A DNA stretch of 64,000 nt. Source: Phallusia mammillata. Taxonomy: Eukaryota. Both the position numbers and the translations under genes were made by a program. The stretch is from positions 12,586,001 to 12,650,000 of the forward strand of contig OZ281500.1 of the NCBI GenBank assembly GCA_965637545.1, read 5' to 3'. Every line of letters starts with the position of its first letter. The first letter of the stretch is position 1. Of this stretch, positions 2,966 through 63,105 are shown piece by piece. The notes beneath the pieces are model-generated. The model did not search any database, was not told the DNA's origin, and saw only the letters and a list, made by a program, of their open reading frames with translations.

Positions 2966-3075
2966 TTTTCTTCACCTAGCGGCAGTTTCTTTCCAACGAG
3001 CAAAGTAGAAAGCTTCTCTCGATCGGCGACAGTTGAAACTTTACTTTCAACGAGCAGTAGTTGAAAACTTCTTTA

Positions 3076-4462
3076 TGTAGACTCTGAACGGCCGACCTGC
3101 AAGGCTGAGCCTCACAAAGGGGTTTTTTCACGTTGAAACACGCCCCGCCCTTTCCCACACAAATCACACTTCCCGAATCTCGTGTAATAATCCACAGCGA
3201 CAACAGCGGCAACAACCACAACGTCGTACACAATCAGGAACGGACAGAAACAAGAATGAGAACGGAAACGGGAACGGAGACGGGAACGGTTTTCTAAACA
3301 AGAAAACGAAACACATTGACATATGTCAACGCACAAAAATGCCAATGTCTAACTTACAAACTATTTTGCGACACAGGTCAACAGGTACAGTTCACGTATC
3401 AACAGTTGCAAGACGATGAAACAATCGCTGCAATGACTATAGGAAAATACAGCATGCCATAAGTTACACATAAACGCCATGAATTAATTTAGGTCACAAG
3501 TCAAATTAAACACTCACCGACAATCACGGTAAACAGGCTTCACTTGAAGATTAATTAGTCAGTCGTCACAATATTTAATATAGCCTTAGTCGTCTCTAAA
3601 AATGTAACACAAACGAATTTACTTAATGCAGTTATAAATCACCTTGCTCGACCACGTTGTACAGTAAATGAATCAATCATTGCAACCAGGGTTGCCAGGT
3701 ACTGTCGGCTGGATTCGGACAGTATTTGTCTGAAAATCGGACATTTTAGGACAAAAAAAACGAGAGCGTAAAATTGCTAACAAGGTATCAATATCGAGGT
3801 GCCATCTGCCATTTTTTGTGCGTTTACGTTCCCCAAAGTGACGGACGTAAAATATGACGTCACTTATGCGTGCAACCACTAGAACTGAAATCCAAACTTG
3901 AAGCCCAACAAACGTCCTATGTTTGAAATAATATTTAGTTGGCAATTGCAACACGTTGCTGTAGTGTTTATCATTGGTTTCGCACCGTTTAAAAAATGTT
4001 TCGTCAACTTGTTGCTTCATATCACCTTAGATAACCATTTGTTACAATACAATTGCTTTGTACACAACAATGGTCATTCACTAGCAGACAATTATGTATT
4101 TAATGTCATAAACAAGGTACTAACCAAAACAAGTTGTACTTTTAAACCACGTTTTGTCGTAAAAAAGGGTTTGCAACCTTCAAAAAATAGGAAGGAGACA
4201 AAAAGTTATTCAATCAGCAAAATTCGGACATATTAGGACAAAAAACTAAACGTCCTAATGATTTTTACGCGTCGGACACAGCATGTGGAATTAGGCCAAT
4301 TTATCGTTTTTTGTCCGATTTTTAGGCCACCTGGCAACCCTGATTGCAACATACAGACAATAGCCTTCCAATTTTACTGTTACGCACATGGCGATTGTAA
4401 CGTCATAGCAGGGGAATAATGAGACAAGTTAATCATGCGTATCTGAACGTGGACATGTAACA
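3076..4462 (-). repeat. 5' LTR of BEL family 1 (about 720 bp without the MITE)
   Basis: TGTTACA start at 4462. The inner end is inferred at ...TCTACA (3076) because the following leader resembles that of family 2. The partner LTR is outside the window, so the inner boundary is unconfirmed. Confidence 0.6.
3687..4342. mobile_element. hAT-type MITE inserted in BEL1 LTR
   Basis: Perfect 14-bp TIR CAGGGTTGCCAGGT; 8-bp TSD ATTGCAAC (3679-3686, 4343-4350). Confidence 0.93.
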
Positions 4463-4467
4463 CTGCT

Positions 4468-5142
4468 TGTAACGTCAGGAATTTGCGCGCCTGGTACCGC
4501 GCTGGCGTCACACTAGAGAAGTCCAATTTCTGCAAACGCGTGAATTTATTTTACACTTCGACACGGTAATCACGTCACGTTCACCGTAGACACGACACGA
4601 CACGATAGACACGTTCAAGATAATCACGGTTTTCTGCAAAGAGAACATTCACTCAAAAATGCGAAACAGAAATTAAATTTATACAGGCAGAAATAAAGCT
4701 TACCAGAGTTTTGGACCAGGGTATCAAAGATAAACACAGTTTGATATCACCAGAAAGTGTTCTACACAGATAAAAAACGTAGACTTTTAATATACGGTTA
4801 ATTGCGATAAGACAACTTTAATGCAAATCAAGCTTACCTTGCAAAGGCAACATTAATCCTTTTCGTCAGAGTTTTTAAGTTTATAAAGCATTACCATCTA
4901 TTAATGACAAACAAATTATAATTAGTCACTTTCATTACTTTATCTAACGTTTGCAAATTAAAGTCAGCAACTAACAAACTACACGTGGTCCAAACTAAAC
5001 TCGATACTAAATGGCCAAAAGCACAGCATAGAGAAATAAACTACAATGATATTGTTACGTCATAGGGGATTCTGGCATTGTGGTGCAATCACACCATATA
5101 AGATGTGACGTAGGTTACGGTTGAGTGATTTACGATGTTACA
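4468..5142 (-). repeat. 3' LTR of BEL2 (675 bp)
   Basis: Matches 13020-13709 except for two substitutions and a 15-bp indel seen by eye; TGT...ACA termini. Confidence 0.97.
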
Positions 5143-5316: not shown

Positions 5317-8300
5317 CAGGGGCGGCTCGTGCTAGGGTGCTGCGGAGCTGCAGCACCCCCTAGATATTTTTACTTAATGGTCCTACCACAACAATACAGA
5401 TAACTTTCATTATACTGATTTTTTTATTCTTAAGTATAATTTTTACAAGTATAATTTCCGCCTTGATCGGCATTTTTTTCATTTAAAAAAAAAAATGCCA
5501 TTAATATGTTATCTATGGTGGAACTGCAGCTCCGGTTTCATGACGAATCGTGACGTTTCATGACGTTCTGCACTTGTGCGCATGCGCACTTCCTGTAGTT
5601 GTGTTGTCTGTTCCGGGTTTACTGTGCTCCAAAGCCAAACCCGTGTACTGTATTTTTAAGTTCGACAGTGAGTACAGTTACATGATTATTTTTGACGGTT
5701 AGTCGTGACTTTTTTAAGTGACTGTAAGTGGGCTTCAGTTTTTGCAGTTATCATTAACTCAAAAAGTGTATCTCACACCTTCAAAAAAAGGTCATCTAAC
5801 ACTTTGAAAAGTCACGATTAACCGTTATAATAAAAACCTGAATAAAAAGCTTAAGAAAAAATGGGATAAAACATCTGCTATTCCAAATATGTCATGCAGA
5901 AATAAGCAACAAGAAATACTCAGTTTTAGTTTTGAATGCTAACAAAGATAAAACAGCTTTGTGACTGTGGAGTTAAATGCCTCACTGAAATTCAGGCAAT
6001 ATTAAATGCAGAACAAGCAATTGCAGAAGCAACAGTAATTTTGAAACGCCTTAGTGATGGCAATTTCAAGTTTTGGTTTCTTAAAACACCATGTGGACAG
6101 CATTTGCAACCAAGTGCAATCTTGTGTATTGATATAATGGATGAACTGTTTGTCTAGTACAGGGGTGGGCAAACTACGGCCCGCGGGCCGCATGCGGCCC
6201 GCCAAATGTTTCCGAGTAACGCTGAATAGTAGTATGAGCACAGGCGCAGAGTTTTAAAAATACCGGGGGTGTGACTTGCCGATACCAATACCATGTACAG
6301 TATCTGTACCCGCACGATCAGGGTTTTTTTAAGGTTTGGTTTGGGTGACCGCTAAGTAGTTTTAAGAGACCGCAAGTGTTTCATTTAAATACCAAAAAAT
6401 AGCATTTCCAAATTTTGGGAAACCGCTGGAGAAATTTGGGGAAACACCTTAAAAAAAACACTGCCACGATACTTTGGAACTAAACACAGATACTTTTCAC
6501 GTGCTTTAGCCTGCCACGTTATTATGCAAATCATCACTTGACACAATTTCTTCGTTCGATAAAAGTAAAAGCGATTCACGTTTTCAGATACAGCCCACTT
6601 TGCACTGTTGACGCCCAAACTTTGGTACAAGGACTTCATTAACAAAAACGTGGTTCAGCCTTTGTTGCAACAAACACTTGTTTTTTTGAAACAATTACAA
6701 TTGTAGCGTTTCAACCAATGTTTGTACAATAATGAACAAGCGTATTTGCATAAAGCTGAAAATATACTACGTAATAATTTTGCGCAGGGGTGCATAACCT
6801 GCGGCCGCAATCTATTTTGCTAAATATTTTGATTTTCAAACTGCTAAAACAGATTTCGTGGGACTGGAAAAAAGATTACCAGTCTAGTAACCATATGCGC
6901 CAGGCTTTTTATCCGCTTATTATGTGCAAACAATGCGAAAAAACGGGGACTGCAATTGTCACAATACAGTTTATGACGTCATAAACCGTTAGCTCTGTTC
7001 AGCTAAACTTGTGCACAAGTTAGAAATTGTTAATCAGAGCATCTTAGGCGACTTTAAATGGTATATATATGATACAAACCTTATTCTTTACATCAATGTT
7101 TTACGAAACAACAAGCAAGCAATTGGCGACCGTTGGTGAAATACCATGCGGCCCGATAAGATTATAAAGTTTTGAATGCGGCCCTTGCACTGAAAAGTTT
7201 GCCCACCCCTGGTCTAGTAGCTGCTAAATTGCCGCACAGGAAATGTTTCTTAAGAATGGACATTCTACAGAGGAGATAGTAGTGACCAGCAAGCATATCT
7301 TATTGATAAAATAGTTACTGAAACTTTAAAAAAAAGAAACGCCAGTTAGCCAGCAATTTCTATGAGTCCCTCAAAGGCAAAACGATTCTTTTCAACACTG
7401 AAAAGGATGCAAACTTTTCTAGGGAACACCATTATTTTCAAAAGATTTGCACTTGCAGTGCTAGCTCTAAATAAAAAAAGTTTCTGAATTGTCATTTGGA
7501 AATCAAGGAAGAAGCTCAAATTTATTTTGATCAATTATTTTGCCCAAACTATAACTTTATGATTCATTTTGGTTGCAAAAAGGAAGCACAATGTTTAATG
7601 ATATGTTTTAAATTTAAGTGAGAGTGTTGTAAATTTCAAAGCTTGCAGAGTTTTGCACTTCAAAAAAAGGAATTATATGCTATTTACCACCAAGTAATGC
7701 AGCAAGTATAGCAATTAAGAAAGTTAAAAGCAATTAATGGTCTGTACACAAAAATTAAGAAAAGATGTTTCAATAAACAAGTTTTGACACAAATGTAATG
7801 TGGTTGTTAAATTTGCCAGTTATGATACTTTTGGCTCGTTTTTGTGTGTGGCAATAATCTGTGAAGTGTCATAGAATATGTTAAAAACGCTGATTGTGAC
7901 AATAAGTTACTAAAATGAAACATGGCCATATTAATGACTGAATAGCAAGTGTGTTAGTTAGTGATCATTGTTACAACCAGTTTTTCTTAAATGTTGTCCA
8001 ACTGAAATACTTCGACCTTTTTCGACTCATTTATTACTGACTTGTTTCTATGTATTGTTGTTGTGTTTTACCGTATGTACACCAGCGTCGTTTCGAGTGT
8101 CACGTGTGTTTTTTGTGCCACATTATTACTGCATGTTATTGAGTTTGGTCCGTCGCTGTGCAAGTAAACAAAATTCCCTAATGATGCCGTCTGCTGTTTA
8201 CACTCGTGTACATTATTGCGTAACAAAAATTACGTCACAATGGAGTTGCTAATTAACATTTGTATTACTTGTTTTTCTACACAAAACAATGGCTAGAAAA

Positions 8301-8398
8301 CTAGAAATGTGACTTTTCTATGTATTGCCAATATTTGTTTAATGAAGGCTAAAATTTGGAGCAGCACCCCCAGAAATTTTAGGCACGAGCCGCCACTG
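5317..8398 (+). mobile_element. Defective hAT DNA transposon inside the BEL2 3' region
   Basis: TIR CAG(G/T)GGCGGCTCGTGC; 8-bp TSD GAAATGCA (5309-5316, 8399-8406); decayed hAT C-terminal dimerisation motif at about 7362-7450 (KRFFSTLKRMQTFLGNT, cf. ERxFSxLKRIKTxLRNT). Confidence 0.9.
6160..7211. mobile_element. Charlie/Buster-type hAT MITE nested in the hAT element
   Basis: TIR CAGGGGTGGGCAAACT; TSD GTCTAGTA (6152-6159, 7212-7219). Confidence 0.93.
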
Positions 8399-8516
8399 GA
8401 AATGCAGCAAACAGCATAGCGTCCGTGATATTTCTTCTTCCATCAGCATCAGGGTCTTGTGCACCGCAATTCAGGGCCAGTTCGACGACTGCGTGGCCTA
8501 AATGCGTCGGATGCAC

Positions 8517-11500
8517 TTATTGGCATTTGGTGCTTGCCTCGCAGGGCAAGCACAATTTTGCAATCGGCCGTCTGTACGTGGAACCAGATTGCGTTTTAAC
8601 ATTGACTTGGCGGACAACACCGTGTTTGTCCGGAAACGCGTGCAGAATGCGTCCAATCTTCAGGTTATGAAGAGATGAATATCGATTCAGCAGACGATCG
8701 GTTGACCCTGACTGTGCAGAAACGTTTACAACAATCCTCTTCCGCTCAGCTGGCTGGAACTCTGGAGGAAGCTGAGTCTTTAACTCCGGCGGGGTTGGCC
8801 ATCGATCTTCTGTCTGCCAAAGAAACTTTGGACCAGTCAGCCATCGGGAGCGGATAAGCTTGCGCACGGACAAACCTCGCGAAGCATCATCGGCAGGGTT
8901 TAGCTGGGAATTCACGTGCCTCCATTGATCAGGACTTGTCTGCCGATGAATTTCGGCCAACCTGTTGGCAACAAATGTACCAAAGCGTTTACTTTGGTTA
9001 TAAATACTTTGTCGGACGGCACACGAGTCTGTCCAAAACACGGACTCGCAGTTATCAAATTTTAATTGGCGTCGAAGCCATTTGTCCGCTTTCACAGCTA
9101 AGACAGCAGCAGCAAGTTCAAGCCTCGGAATGCTTTCAGTTTTCGGGGGTGTCACCTTCGATTTGCCAAATAGAAACGAGCAGTGGACTTGTCCATCAAC
9201 ATCTTCCAGACGAAGGTAGGACACAATTCCATAGCCTTGAGTTGAAGCATCCGAAAAATGGTGCATCTCGCACTTCGCGACTGAGCCGAAAGTAGGAGGC
9301 TTGAAGCAGCGGGGAAGTGTTAACTTCTCGAGCTCCGGCAATTGAGAAAGCCAGCGTCGCCATTCTTCAATATCGTCTTTAGGCAGCTCGTCAACCCACC
9401 CCAGCTTCTGTCGGACTATTTCCTGTTGTAACACCTTAGCAATCAAAGTTACAGGTGCGGCAAAACCCAAAGGGTCATAAAGCGTGTTAACAGCACATAA
9501 AATATTGCGTCGGGTAAATTTCTTGCCTTGCATCGTGTCAGTTATGCTGAATCCAAATTCGTCACTCTGTACCCGCCAGTAAACACCTAGAACGCGCTCT
9601 TTAACGGAAGCGTCCAAGTTTACATCGGTCAGCGATTTTGCTCTCTCTGCCTCTGGGATTTGATCCAAGACACGTTGATTGTTAGATAACCATTTGGTCA
9701 GGCGAAATCCTCCTTTCTTCAGCAAGGCACGTAGTTGCGTGACCAACTCGGTGGCACGCTCGACTGTTTCGGCTGACGTCAAACAATCGTCTACGTAAAA
9801 ATCATTACGGACGATGTCGCCAACATCTTTATCAAACATTTTTCCAAACTGCTCGGCGGTTTCACGCAAGCAGAATGTGGCGCAGCTGGGCGATGACGTT
9901 GCGCCAAAAATGTGCACGAGCATACGATGAACGGTGGGCGTTCGGCATAGATCTCCCCCTGGCCACCACAAAAACCTTAAAGCATCAATGTCAGACTTGT
10001 GAACGCGGACCTGGTGGAACATTGCTTCCACGTCCGCTACCAGAGCAATACTGTTCATACGAAATCGTTCCAAGACACCGATTAAACTATTAACCAAATC
10101 GGGTCCCTGCAGCAAGGCGTCGTTAAGAGACAATCCTCTGTGCTGCGCTATCAAAAACGATGCGTACCTTGTCGGGTTTGCGCGGGTGGCAAACTGGATG
10201 ATGTGGCAAATACCATTGAATATTGTCCAAAGCGTCCTCGGCTTCTTCATTTGTAACTTCTTCTGCGTAGCCCTCATCAATGTAGTCCTGCATCTTCTGG
10301 ACGTACTTGTCTTTAAGAGAGACATCGCGCGAGAAGCGTTTCTTCAGCGACCAAAGCCGTCGTTCAGCCATGTGACGACTGTCTTTCGGTAAAGTGACAT
10401 CACTTCGCCACGGAAGAGGCAAATAAAAATGTCCGTCCGTATGTTTCACTAAGCTCTTCATCATGCGTAGCACCTTTCGGTCTTCAACTGACGTAGGAAA
10501 GGGCAAGTCGTTAGGGTCTTGCATAAATTCGTCCACCCAAGAATCACCGCTTAGTTCCTGGGTATTGCTTCTAAAGAAGTTCACCGAAATATTATCAACA
10601 GCAGGATAGCAGACGGATGGGCCAACAAGCGACCATCCAAGCGGGGTTCTCGCAGCAAAAGGTTGCTTGCGTTCACCTGTTCTCATTTCAAGTACTCTAT
10701 GTGCATATGGGACGTCAGTGCCGATAAGTAGTAGCACCTCTCCTTCGTCCAACTCAGGAAATTCCAAACCCTGGAGGTGTGGAAACCTGTTCACCTCCGA
10801 CTTCGTTGGCGTCGGATTTGGCTCAACCGGTATGGTGTCGATGGACAGAGCGTTGTCGACACTAATCTCTTCATTTTCATCTAGTGACAAAACGCTAAAA
10901 CTTGCGCTCATTCCGCTATGGTTCGCCGGTCTTCTTCCGACGCTAGACATCGTAACTTGTTTTGGTCTTCCTCTTATTGGAAGCAGATCTGCCAACCTTT
11001 TGTCATAGAAGCTTGTGTCAGACCCTTGGTCGAGGAACGCGTACGTTATGATCTCCTGACCGTTCGACCGAATTTTTACTGGAATAACAGAAAAGTACGA
11101 CGAATGACAGTTCTTTATCGCGTTGCACCTGGCTGTAGAACTCGATGTCTGTCCATTAGGAGGTTCGCTGCGCGGAGCACTGTTGTATCTCTCAGGAGCA
11201 TGTGCGTATGTCCTGGAACGCACGGAATTTTGCATATTTTCATGTAGCAACGGGTGGTGTGAAAGGTTGCAACCTCTGACAGTACAGGCACTGGGCTGGG
11301 TACACACCCTTGACGTATGTCGATAACCAAAACAGTTAAAGCACATAAACTTATCTCTTAGAAACTCTCTTCTCTGCACCGTGGATTTGCGTGGCGCTTC
11401 TTTTCTTCAGCCTTTCGGGAAACACACAATTGACCAGGTAAAGTATTTACAACGGCAGACTCTTCGACGAACTCAACGAGATCGGCAAAATCCGCTTCTC

Positions 11501-12903
11501 TACCAGTTTTCCTTACAGTCTGCGCGACTCGGCGGCGCCAGAGCTTTTGCGACTCGTACGGGAGCCTATTTGCAAGAGCCACTAAACGGTCAACTGTGTT
11601 AAGATCAGCAAAATTCCCTAGCTGGCGAAGTACCAGCAGACATTTCCTCATAGTCTGCGCATAAGTGCGCATAAGTGCGCATACCAGTAGCATCGTCCGG
11701 TTTTAAGTTCGGACCCTTAGTTAACTCTTCAACAAAAGCTCTAGCAACTATGTAGGGCTTACCGAAGTTCTCATAAAGAATGCTTCTTGCCTTGGTATAA
11801 CCTTCTTCCGTATCTAGAACAGAGCAATGTGCAATTAAAGACCTCGCTTTTCCTTTGCACTGGTTTATAAGCAGTGTTAGTCGCATAGCATCGCTTCGTG
11901 TTTTGCATTAGAGATTGGATTCAAAGTAGCGTACGAACATCCAATAATCTGTAGGATTGCCCGAGAACGTCATGTGATCGGGCTTCGGCATACTCATGCC
12001 CTCTCCAACTGCCTTCACTATGCATGGAAGCACAGCTGGGTTTTCTTCGTTCACTTTAACAACTGATTGAGCTTTCGTCACAGGTACACGTACATTGGGA
12101 CGCATGCTTTCCTGTGGTTCTTCTCTATCTCGGATAGGAAACGTACAGTTCCGAGTAGCAGAGGATGTCATTTGACCGTCATTGGAGGCTACATCGGGGA
12201 AAACCGATACTACATCTGGAATCTGTTCCTCGTCGGACCTCTTGTCCATTTGTGATAATCGTTCGTCGTCTTCATTTAGGATTCTAGCTCTTGCGTCGGC
12301 AGCTTGAAACTCGTATTTTGCCTGTAACTTTCGCTTTTCGTTTGCGAGATCGTTTTCTTCATCGACTTGTTTGAGGCGAAGTAATGCAAGTTCCCGCTCT
12401 ACCTTTGCCTCTCGGCGACTTCTCGCGGAAGCGGATGTGCTCGCGCTAGATGTACGTGAGCGGCCAGACCGTGATGTCCTACTAGAGACAACAGTAGGGG
12501 CCCTGAACTGCGGACTTAGCACAAGTTCTGGCAGTGAGTCAGGCATTTTGGAAGGCGGTAGCTCTGATACTCTATTTTCGAATTCAAGTTTGCTGTGTTC
12601 AAGAGATTTTAAATCTTCTTTGGAAGCAGCAAGTTTCTCTGGGTCGTTACATGAATTAATAAATGCATCGTACATACTGTGAAGTATCGTGTAGTTTTCG
12701 TCAATTTGTTTTTGAGCCACTCGCAATGTGGAGTGCTCTTTATTTAGAATGCCAGTTTCAGCCACAACATACCAGCTATTCAATTTATCTGCACATCGGC
12801 GTAGATCGTCGTAGGTTGGGACCGGTTGTGCAGCAAATGGTCTCAAACGTGTAGGCACCGGCGATTCCATCGGAGATAGTGTTTTTTTCAAATCTTCAGC
12901 CAT
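8517..12903 (-). pseudogene. BEL2 gag-PR-RT-RNaseH with integrase core deleted
   Basis: Gag from 12903; in-frame stop at 11908; 10-bp tandem duplication at 11656-11683; deletion of the first zinc knuckle near 11380; small frameshifting deletion near 10140. RT (FYVDDCL) and RNase H (HHFSDAS, IPRLELAAA, FWTDS, NPADDASRG) are present, then a jump YSSLHNLK to IGRILHAFPD skips integrase. Confidence 0.92.
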
Positions 12904-13019
12904 CGTGGCGAAAGTCGCTTTATAGATAACTCTGGAATCCTTGTATATAGTAGCCTCTGGAAACTTTATTTCCAGGTAACTCTGAAAACTTTATTTTCAG
13001 CAAACTCTGAAAACTTTAA

Positions 13020-13709
13020 TGTAACGTCAGGAATTTGCGCGCCTGGTACCGCGCTGGCGTCACACTAGAGAAGTCCAATTTCTGGAAACGCGTGAATTTA
13101 TTTTACACTTCGACGCGGTTCAATAGGACACGGTAATCACGTCACGTTCACCGTAGACACGACACGACACGATAGACACGTTCAAGATAATCACGGTTTT
13201 CTGCAAAGAGAACATTCACTCAAAAATGCGAAACAGAAATTAAATTTATACCGGCAGAAATAAAGCTTACCAGAGTTTTGGACCAGGGTATCAAAGATAA
13301 ACACAGTTTGATATCACCAGAAAGTGTTCTACACAGATAAAAAACGTAGACTTTTAATATACGGTTAATTGCGATAAGACAACTTTAATGCAAATCAAGC
13401 TTACCTTGCAAAGGCAACATTAATCCTTTTCGTCAGAGTTTTTAAGTTTATAAAGCATTACCATCTATTAATGACAAACAAATTATAATTAGTCACTTTC
13501 ATTACTTTATCTAACGTTTGCAAATTAAAGTCAGCAACTAACAAACTACACGTGGTCCAAACTAAACTCGATACTAAATGGCCAAAAGCACAGCATAGAG
13601 AAATAAACTACAATGATATTGTTACGTCATAGGGGATTCTGGCATTGTGGTGCAATCACACCATATAAGATGTGACGTAGGTTACGGTTGAGTGATTTAC
13701 GATGTTACA
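13020..13709 (-). repeat. 5' LTR of BEL2 (690 bp)
   Basis: Near-identical to 4468-5142; contains AATAAA on the sense strand; followed by the gag leader. Confidence 0.97.
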
Positions 13710-14214: not shown

Positions 14215-15515
14215 TCCCCAAAGTTTGTCCGACTCGTTTTTCCATCAAATCCTTGATGGATTTGGATGAAACTTACACAGATGGTAGATGTAGTTATGTA
14301 GATGTGCATCCCACTTTGTTTTTGTTGATAACCCCAGTATTTACCCCGCTAGACCTCTAAAATAGGTATTTTTTCCCCGAAGTTTGTCCGACTCGTTTTT
14401 CCATCAAATGTTTGATGGATTTGGGTGAAATTTAAACAGATGGTAGATGTAGTTATGTAGATGTGCATCCCTCTTTGTTTTTGTTGATAACCCCAGCAAG
14501 GGCGTCCGCACATAGGGGCAAATGGGGTCAGCTGACCCCCCCTGGAAAATTTTTGGATGAAAAATGAAAAAGCGAGAACATGCAAAAATAGGCAATTTTC
14601 TGAAAGAGGGAGGAGTAAAGGTGATACGAGTGATGGCTGGCTGGTCAAGCTCTCCGATTGTGATCATCACCCTTTTCGGGAGTATCCCACCCTCTATTAA
14701 TTTACGAAGATACCTACAAGCTACCCGTAATCGCAAAATTTGACAACTTGAGCTCCTGTACCCTCAGAACCACATTACTAGTGTGGGCACTGGCTTTATC
14801 TCACATAAATCTGAAGAAGGATAATTCACAGTTTCAGATAAAATCTATAAAATCATTATCCAATAACCTATCAACGCGACGTTCCGGATATTTCACTTTG
14901 TTGATGAACTCGTTAGCGTCCTCCTGAGCATGACAATGCCAAGCACTACTAACATGGTTTCGAGCAGAGTTATGGAAATTTATACTTTATACATGGAGCA
15001 CTGGTGAATGCGCCAGTTGTGTCACGATGAATAGGCTGCCGAAAGAGCACACACAATTTGCACATGCGCCCTCTTAGGAGAGGAGAATACGCTGGCCACC
15101 GAAAGGGCAGAGTGAACCCTCCTTGACCCTCACTAACCGAAAACCTGCGGACGCCCTTGAACCCCAGTATTTACCCCGCTAGCCCCCTAAAATGGGTATT
15201 TTCCCCCGAAGTTTGTCCGACTCGTTTTTCTATCGAATGTTTGATGGATTTGGCTGAAATTTACGCAGGTGGTTGATGTAGTTATGTAGATGTGCATGCC
15301 ACTTTGTTTTTGTTGATAACCCCAGTATTTACCCCGCTAGCCCCCTAAAATGGTTTTTCCCCCCAAAGTTTGTCTGACTTGTTTTGCCATCAAATGATTG
15401 ATGGATGTGGCTGAAACTTATACAGATGGTAGATATAGTTATGTAGATGTGCATCCCAATTTGTTTGTCCGGATAACCTTAGTATTTACTCCGCTAGCCC
15501 CCTAAAAGGGGTGAG
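14215..15515. repeat. ~158-bp minisatellite, about 4 units, interrupted by a MITE
   Basis: Unit starts (CCCC(A/G)AAGTTTGTC) recur near 14216, 14375, 15204 and 15361. Confidence 0.9.
14497..15159. mobile_element. hAT-type MITE/deletion derivative
   Basis: Perfect TIR CAAGGGCGTCCGCA; TSD AACCCCAG (14489-14496, 15160-15167). Confidence 0.93.
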
Positions 15516-57055: not shown

Positions 57056-57932
57056 TGTTACATCGCCTTGTACATATGTTTATGTTTTCTGTGTTTCCCG
57101 CCAGTAGCCTTGATTCGTGTGTATGACGCAGTGTTGTGCAACCTGATACATTGTCTGGCACACTATCGGTGATTGTGATGTCACAACTTTGACATTGTTT
57201 ATTGGTAACACGTCTTGTAAGCAAGACCGCCTCGTGTTTATTAGTGACTGGAACTTACAGCGTCTGCATGCGTTTTTTAACTGGTCATTTATGTTTGTTT
57301 TTTGTGTAACAAACAGGAAAATTATGCTGTTTAGAAACTGAATCGTCCAATGTGTGACTTGTATATTTAGTGATCGGTAAGCATATGTTTAAACCTTGTT
57401 GTGACCTTTTGGATTTGAATTTATATGAAACCTGTATTCAGACGTGAATTCCGCCGTCGTCCAACCCCGTGTTATTCTGAACCGAACTGTGTTATTCCGG
57501 TAAGATTATTGTTGCTTAAGTTTGCCGTCAGTCACTAGTGTGATTAAGTGATGTTTATATGTGATGTTATTAGATGCTGTGTTTACAGACCTTCTACTGA
57601 TCGCTTGCATTTAAACGACTCCAGTCCTTTAATAGTTTGGTAAGCGTAAATGTCATTGAAATTCTCCTTCTGTTGCCTTGTCTTAATTTGAACATTTTTT
57701 GTAGAAACCGCCTTTTGACCCCTTGTACTCGCCGTGCTGCCATACTCTCGAGCGCCATCTTTCGGCTATATTGTAAAATAAAAGAGTTCGTTATATAGCT
57801 GCTGGCGTCTTGGAGTTTGAGCGCAAGGAAAGGCGCGTTAAAGACAATTTTAGGAACACAAGCGATCGCCCCTGTTGTGCTGTCTGGAGGCGCATGGAGT
57901 CACGCCTTCCGATAATTAAAGACAGCGCAACA
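57056..57932 (+). repeat. 5' LTR of BEL3
   Basis: TGTTACA...CAACA; AATAAA near 57777. Confidence 0.97.
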
Positions 57933-62228: not shown

Positions 62229-63105
62229 TGTTACATCGCCTTGTACATATGTTTATGTTTTCTGTGTTTCCCGCCAGTAGCCTTGATTCGTGTGTATGAC
62301 GCAGTGTTGTGCAACCTGATACATTGTCTGGCACACTATCGGTGATTGTGATGTCACAACTTTGACATTGTTTATTGGTAACACGTCTTGTAAGCAAGAC
62401 CGCCTCGTGTTTATTAGTGACTGGAACTTACAGCGTCTGCATGCGTTTTTTAACTGGTCATTTATGTTTGTTTTTTGTGTAACAAACAGGAAAATTATGC
62501 TGTTTAGAAACTGAATCGTCCAATGTGTGACTTGTATATTTAGTGATCGGTAAGCATATGTTTAAACCTTGTTGTGACCTTTTGGATTTGAATTTATATG
62601 AAACCTGTATTCAGACGTGAATTCCGCCGTCGTCCAACCCCGTGTTATTCTGAACCGAACTGTGTTATTCCGGTAAGATTATTGTTGCTTAAGTTTGCCG
62701 TCAGTCACTAGTGTGATTAAGTGATGTTTATATGTGATGTTATTAGATGCTGTGTTTACAGACCTTCTACTGATCGCTTGCATTTAAACGACTCCAGTCC
62801 TTTAATAGTTTGGTAAGCGTAAATGTCATTGAAATTCTCCTTCTGTTGCCTTGTCTTAATTTGAACATTTTTTGTAGAAACCGCCTTTTGACCCCTTGTA
62901 CTCGCCGTGCTGCCATACTCTCGAGCGCCATCTTTCGGCTATATTGTAAAATAAAAGAGTTCGTTATATAGCTGCTGGCGTCTTGGAGTTTGAGCGCAAG
63001 GAAAGGCGCGTTAAAGACAATTTTAGGAACACAAGCGATCGCCCCTGTTGTGCTGTCTGGAGGCGCATGGAGTCACGCCTTCCGATAATTAAAGACAGCG
63101 CAACA
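62229..63105 (+). repeat. 3' LTR of BEL3
   Basis: Apparently identical to 57056-57932. Confidence 0.97.

Follow-up and report, generated by a model that had tools for sequence, protein, structure and literature searches.

LTR retrotransposons that prime reverse transcription without a tRNA include the Tf1/Tf2 type (fission yeast; Tf1/sushi group), in which the sequence just after the 5' LTR is complementary to the element's own transcribed LTR and covaries with it between families, the primer being the first 11 nt of the transcript. Hairpin priming in chromoviruses is also mentioned in the literature (PMC3601003). Belpaoviridae, by contrast, are profiled as tRNA-primed elements with an 18-nt primer site for tRNA-Arg or tRNA-Gly, and the ICTV profile mentions no splicing (PMC8742986). 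Introns lying wholly inside LTRs, with canonical junctions, were claimed as a first in a 2026 preprint on maize, where introns of about 1.3 kb in plant Ty1/Ty3 elements were read as belonging to non-coding LTR transcripts, with no proposed link to priming (PMC13192763). Internal introns of LTR retrotransposons (Ogre, EVADE, BARE1, Cer1) have been reviewed (PMC12786077), and in Echinococcus the LTRs of ta-TRIM elements are spliced in cis to a trans-splice acceptor of a host gene (PMC4558846). Splice donors also lie in the R region of HTLV-1 and foamy viruses. Our literature searches found no report of LTR introns or of self-priming in BEL/Pao elements.

The element analyzed here compares differently with each of these systems. 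It shares with textbook Belpaoviridae the LTRs, the Pao peptidase/RT, DUF5641, a polypurine tract and a 5-bp target duplication, with a DUF1759 gag found in its neighbors BEL1 and BEL3, but no tRNA-type primer site is visible and the LTRs of these three families carry 2-3 predicted introns. As in the Tf1 type, the sequence after the 5' LTR is complementary to the element's own LTR. However, the complementary stretch is split by a predicted intron in the DNA and would exist only after splicing, it would lie about 70-80 nt into the spliced RNA and not at its first 11 nt, and the elements are BEL/Pao, not Ty3/gypsy. Compared with the maize case, the candidate introns are short (47-90 nt in the three families of the window) and, as we infer, sit in the leader of the coding RNA of animal elements. 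In Ogre, EVADE, BARE1, Cer1 and the viral examples splicing likewise separates RNA pools with different roles, and a 5' splice site can lie in R, but those introns span coding sequence or end far downstream, whereas here whole introns lie inside the LTR and therefore occur twice per RNA. In Echinococcus the donor may be fortuitous; here it is a conserved donor of a predicted LTR intron.

The BEL2 element and its neighbors

The window is a 64,000-nt stretch of the Phallusia mammillata genome (GCA_965637545.1, contig OZ281500.1, positions 12,586,001 to 12,650,000), and all positions without a prefix refer to it. It holds a 9.2-kb BEL/Pao element on the minus strand, BEL2, with the following features.

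13020-13709, minus strand: 5' LTR (690 nt, TG...CA), with the target duplication AGCAG at 13714-13710
13447-13452, minus strand: TATAAA, candidate promoter element, not conserved in BEL1 or BEL3
13405-13425, minus strand: putative exon 1, ending GCAAG, its 5' end placed only by its position relative to TATAAA; the last upstream ATG is at 13420
13329-13404, minus strand: predicted intron 1 (76 nt, GTAAGC...TGTGTAG)
13271-13328, minus strand: predicted exon 2 (58 nt)
13201-13270, minus strand: predicted intron 2 (70 nt, preceded by CTCTG, GTAAGC...TTTGCAG), holding the only ATG between 13419 and the gag start
13020-13200, minus strand: exon 3 part of the LTR (starts AAAACCG; AATAAA at 13102-13097; U5 end)
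13002-13014, minus strand: GTTTTCAGAGTTT, 5 nt after the LTR, perfect complement of the predicted spliced exon 2/exon 3 junction AAACTCTG|AAAAC, standing where a primer-binding site would be
12904-13019, minus strand: leader with 25-nt repeats, ATG-free, without a tRNA-type primer-binding site
11908-12903, minus strand: first ORF after the leader (331 aa, gag position; no Pfam match)
8517-11379, minus strand: pol ORF pieces (RVT_1, Peptidase_A17, DUF5641)
5317-8400: 3.08-kb foreign insert inside this copy
4468-5142, minus strand: 3' LTR (675 nt) with the same segments at 4837-4762 and 4703-4634, the polypurine tract GGGGGGAGAA at 5152-5143 and the target duplication at 4467-4463
3294-3642, minus strand: BEL1 LTR with three candidate introns (3642-3596, 3517-3437, 3357-3294); all six downstream ATGs lie inside them
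3058-3068, minus strand: BEL1 leader GTTTTCAACTA, complement of that family's last exon junction TAGTTG|AAAAC
57377-57704, plus strand: BEL3 LTR with three candidate introns (57377-57441, 57500-57588, 57640-57704)

The two LTRs of BEL2 differ by 2 substitutions and one 15-nt indel, and thus the insertion is young. The indel falls in the CGTGT-rich start of exon 3 (13130-13195), which is an indel hot spot among copies. The Pfam match to Peptidase_A17 has an E value of 1.6e-44. This copy is broken: no integrase domain and no Pfam hit for gag were detected, and it is about 1.5 kb shorter than the 6.9-7.0-kb copies elsewhere. BEL1 and BEL3 have DUF1759, and BEL3 also has rve. Part of the foreign insert (about 8000-8400) is an extremely abundant repeat, with a contig depth about 100 times that of the element in the DNA-like run X10. 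The downstream target duplication (4463-4467) abuts the first base of the BEL1 5' LTR (4462), so BEL2 inserted directly at the outer edge of BEL1. The BEL3 LTRs (57056-57932 and 62229-63105) are 100% identical over 877 nt, indicating a very recent insertion. Just outside the BEL2 5' LTR, at 14216-15515, lie four copies of a 155-nt repeat in two tandem pairs (81-90% identical).

An earlier note, made from the sequence alone, had described the 76- and 70-nt GTAAGC...YAG segments in both BEL2 LTRs, separated by a 58-nt exon and lying between a TATAAA and the AATAAA, and had read them as canonical mini-introns, probably in R. The observation holds in every particular, including the remark that the first exon ends GCAAG as in BEL1 although the LTRs are otherwise unrelated: the three BEL LTRs of the window share no BLASTN similarity. 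The interpretation is supported by our analysis, insofar that nothing contradicts it and five independent lines of evidence favor it, namely conserved splice signals in propagated lineages, one LTR copy without intron 1, one contig that uses donor 2, confinement of ATGs to the predicted introns, and covariation of the exon 2/exon 3 junction with the primer-binding-site position across species. The architecture shared with BEL1 extends to BEL3, to at least 6 further LTR families of this genome, and to Styela clava and a sea star.

Evidence bearing on the two candidate introns

The motifs alone are only mildly unusual. With a loose definition (GTRAG, 45-100 nt, pyrimidine-rich tract, YAG) the sense strand of the LTR has exactly these two candidates and the antisense strand none, a density about 10 times that of the rest of the window, but two or more candidates occur in 2.9% of shuffles. 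Both segments have the GT...AG ends, GTRAG donor, pyrimidine tract and YAG of U2-type spliceosomal introns, and their lengths (70 and 76 nt) compare with 66 nt for the first intron of the host H-NOX gene, the single host example considered. The case therefore rests on further evidence.

The 240-Mb genome holds at least 59 copies of exon 2 with donor 2. In an alignment of 39 distinct LTR copies (79-100% identical), GT and AG are kept in all but three single copies. At the 8 core positions there are 3 private variants, corresponding to the neutral decay rate, and 0 shared variants. Of 26 splice-signal positions only 2 carry a variant shared by two or more copies, and both stay within consensus (GTAAG to GTGAG, and a G to T in the pyrimidine tract), whereas intron interiors have 36 such positions of 120 (Fisher P 0.012). 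Lineages that went on copying never had a broken site. Substitution rates were less informative: the interior of intron 1 shows 1.05 events per site against 0.6-0.7 in the exons, but intron 2 shows 0.65, and we do not rely on this comparison.

One old copy, L035 (G000:C2:20731529-20731873, where G000:C2 designates a sequence of this genome), lacks intron 1 to within 1 nt and keeps intron 2. Every other copy examined has intron 1. L035 groups with an intron-bearing copy in the tree, and BEL1 and BEL3 also have a first intron by prediction, so this is a loss. However, its junction reads GCAAG-GATAC where exact splicing predicts GCAAG-AAT.C, and one or two substitutions are needed to reconcile the two; in a copy about 14% diverged this is compatible with exact splicing but is not proof of it. 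No copy lacking intron 2 was found within 3 mismatches of the junction 30-mer.

Exon-exon junctions, which had been named beforehand as a test, were sought in three small runs only guessed to be RNA (X1, X3, X4) and one DNA-like run (X10), all as contigs. No contig joined 13405 to 13328 or 13271 to 13200, which says little given the size of these sets. Contigs of X3 (13161-13581) and X4 (13286-13569) keep the introns, but both extend into U3, more than 110 nt upstream of the TATA box, and may represent 3' LTR, read-through or DNA. One X1 contig matches the LTR exactly up to 13271, the last base of exon 2, and then continues for at least 255 letters in unrelated sequence. The adjacent 30-mer occurs once in the genome, at G000:C2:25446187-25446216, where it is preceded by TTTTTTAAG and followed after 44 nt by the start codon of an H-NOX gene, in an exon matching the first 39 positions of the HNOB domain. 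The join therefore has GT on one side and AG on the other, and donor 2 is taken to work in vivo on the strength of this one chimeric contig. No LTR lies within 30 kb upstream of that gene, and no same-strand copy lies between it and one 800 kb upstream in the reference. The likeliest source is an insertion absent from the reference that is spliced in cis onto an acceptor made for the spliced leader, as shown for Echinococcus ta-TRIM (PMC4558846). In X1 the only coverage above 13431 comes from one 3'-LTR contig, and the abundant contigs in the bin 13238-13431 therefore start below the TATA box. An exact look-up of the gag ORF and a homologue search in a collection of RNA contigs searched through their proteins, from which this species seems to be left out, found nothing.

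A scanned leader should be poor in ATG, whereas removed introns need not be. We counted ATGs from 20 nt before donor 1 to the gag ATG in BEL1, BEL2 and BEL3, whose proteins are 30-70% identical. Predicted exons (1292 nt) hold 2 ATG where composition predicts 22.3 (P 5.5e-8), while predicted introns (557 nt) hold 14 where 11.7 are expected; 14 of 16 ATGs thus lie in introns (P 3e-6). This supports both the removal of the introns from translated RNA and a start upstream of them. There are exceptions: older BEL2 subfamilies carry 1-4 ATG in exon 2, and in elements of other species the contrast is weak (P 0.015), some of their leaders being ATG-rich, perhaps because the gag start is mis-set. The architecture is widespread in this genome. 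The pattern GGTRAG, 45-75 nt, YAG, AAAACCG occurs 154 times against 4 for the control, and at least 6 families have unalignable intron interiors but the same borders.

The exon 2/exon 3 junction and the primer-binding-site position

Removal of intron 2 would join AAACTCTG to AAAAC, and thereby create a 13-nt stretch whose exact complement, GTTTTCAGAGTTT (13014-13002), begins 5 nt after the 5' LTR. This complement is kept in the 5' LTR copies of the family, apart from a single-base difference in one copy. The sequence after the LTR is TTAAAGTTTTCAGAGTTT, in which no TGG-type site is visible; the absence of a tRNA-type site is judged from this motif, and no tRNA gene was found in the window. The minimum-energy fold of the spliced leader pairs the junction with the leader motif, with a duplex energy of -15.4 against -9.7 kcal/mol unspliced. 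The leader itself consists of 2-5 copies of a 25-nt unit (CTGAAAATAAAGTTTTCAGAGTTT-like), the copy number varying between elements, and each unit can form a 7-bp hairpin.

We tested the pairing without presupposing the introns. For each LTR, every GT..AG pair 40-320 nt apart was scored for a junction-spanning perfect complement of the first 30 nt after the LTR, and relatives of pol, at most 54% identical, were included. The top pair in BEL2 is intron 2 of the earlier note (13 nt). In three Styela clava families (A, B and C) the top pairs are canonical introns with the junctions ACAGTCG|AAAAC, ACGTTTG|AAAAC and AAATTCG|ATAAC and the matching leaders GTTTTCGACTGT, GTTTTCAAACGT and GTTATCGAATTT (12 nt each, with different letters; in C both halves differ). 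An element from ENA gives TATTT|TCGAAC (11 nt), also at a canonical intron. In the sea star Patiria a canonical 258-nt intron (GTAAGC...TTACAG) gives AATCG|TGAAC (10 nt), but it ranks second, behind a 12-nt pair with poor splice signals that merely extends a contiguous 9-nt match and that we take to be spurious. Shuffling the leader gives P 0.002-0.014 per element for the top-ranked pair; for Patiria this refers to the spurious pair, and the 10-nt canonical pair alone would not be significant.

Of 60 BEL1 copies, 59 read ...TAGTTG before the last donor, which gives a perfect 11-nt match to GTTTTCAACTA. Only the 5' LTR copy of the window differs, at position 3358, the last base of the exon before the third intron; the other copies include the element's own 3' LTR just outside the window. 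BEL3 pairs only 9 of 10, its leader holding the same 9-mer as the last exon junction (GTTTGAAAC), a near-palindrome. Intron-less LTRs of Ciona intestinalis and a fish hold the complement unbroken (9 and 11 nt), whereas one ENA element (L072) shows no complement; the fish element L070 has no intron candidate. In the Ciona locus (L073) a 65-nt piece next to the LTR, at 4087-4153, recurs four times downstream at spacings of about 1.1-1.4 kb. In total there are seven perfect split cases, counting the second-ranked Patiria pair, and two unbroken ones. In every case the complement starts 2-7 nt after the LTR and ends at ..AC followed by C. Compensating changes on both sides of a junction that exists only after splicing are, in our view, the strongest evidence that intron 2 is spliced and that the spliced form matters.

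Probable splicing, a proposed priming role, and the alternatives

We consider it likely that both segments are genuine GT-AG spliceosomal introns in the transcribed part of the LTR (R, the 5' untranslated region), and as introns they are very probably real. What the analysis establishes is the sequence architecture, its conservation and covariation, one intron-less copy, and the use of donor 2 in one presumed RNA contig, whereas the transcription start (and hence placement in R), the efficiency of splicing, and the priming role, including cleavage of the transcript and its extension as a primer, are inferred. In the model that we regard as most likely, transcription starts about 20 nt before donor 1, shortly before 13405, and the RNA that is translated has both introns removed, leaving a leader almost free of ATG. 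Every new copy must nevertheless be templated from LTR sequence that still holds the introns, because the copies keep them. The spliced junction would pair with the primer-site position, and the transcript would be cut after ..AAC to prime minus-strand synthesis in a Tf1-like manner, which would place the RNA-DNA joint directly after ...CTCTGAAAAC. Strong-stop DNA would then cover only exon 3 and U5, and after the first strand transfer everything upstream, introns included, would be copied from the 3' LTR copy of the RNA if that copy is unspliced. This would explain why nearly every copy examined keeps the introns, and why a copy such as L035 arises now and then. However, a primer of about 80 nt would differ from the 11-nt Tf1 primer, no cDNA intermediate was seen, and the TATA box is absent from BEL1 and BEL3 and cannot serve as a general marker of the start.

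The main rival is that the introns are real and the pairing functional, but in a role other than priming, such as marking spliced RNA for translation, blocking reverse transcription of spliced RNA, or serving in dimerisation or packaging, with an unidentified primer starting DNA synthesis. The pairing closes a long-range helix around the rest of R and U5 in the predicted fold, the leader repeats can form hairpins of their own, and the inferred primer would be unusually long. We regard this alternative as unlikely, though by a smaller margin than the others, since the complement always begins exactly where a primer-binding site lies, has the geometry a primer needs, and differs between families while covarying with the element's own LTR, as in self-priming elements and unlike tRNA-primed ones; nor is a TGG-type site visible.

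It is less likely still that the splice sites are real but the start lies downstream of them, so that the segments sit in U3 and matter only in 3' LTR or read-through RNA, or as donors that capture host exons. The only spliced contig is indeed an LTR-host chimera, contigs that include U3 keep both introns, and older subfamilies have ATGs in exon 2, but the ATG-free state of the internal exons in BEL1, BEL2 and BEL3, the X1 coverage limit just below TATAAA, and a junction whose pairing needs exon 2 and exon 3 on the same RNA as the leader argue against it. That the motifs arose by chance and are never used is very improbable: shuffles yield two candidates at the rate given above and no cis junction was seen, but all the evidence presented counts against this reading, above all the cross-species covariation and the ATG distribution. 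Equally improbable is that the short first exons with their donors act like spliced-leader RNAs. The host uses spliced-leader trans-splicing, exon 1 is leader-sized, and no LTR lies near the H-NOX gene in the reference. An intron of that gene (locus L031, positions 420-660, in G000:C2) holds, antisense to the gene, four tandem, partly degenerate copies of the ascidian spliced-leader exon (ATTCTATTTGAATAAG) followed by GT, each in a unit of about 60 nt. But the BEL2 LTR does not hold this sequence and shows no similarity to the spliced leader, no convincing Sm site is present, there is only one chimeric contig, and cis-splicing from a non-reference insertion explains it more simply.

LTRs are taught as promoter, repeat and poly(A) modules without introns, and BEL/Pao elements as tRNA-primed (PMC8742986). 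Here a whole lineage carries 2-3 predicted host-sized introns in the LTR, and the exon junction made by the last one matches the place where DNA synthesis should start, with compensating changes from ascidians to a sea star. The junction scan and the ATG test offer a simple rule for annotating LTR introns in other genomes. We advance only tentatively the further possibility that in a clade of BEL/Pao retrotransposons of deuterostomes (ascidians, a sea star) the primer for reverse transcription is made by splicing, removal of the last intron from the 5' copy of R creating the pairing sequence and the introns being restored in the progeny from the unspliced 3' copy. Splicing would then be an obligatory step of replication and not only of expression, and this would be a new mechanism. 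If confirmed, our results would give a concrete, testable answer to how these elements prime reverse transcription and separate RNA for translation from RNA for copying, would show how an intron can persist in a sequence that is rebuilt from RNA in every cycle, and would supply conserved donors that can wire host genes to LTR promoters in a trans-splicing animal.
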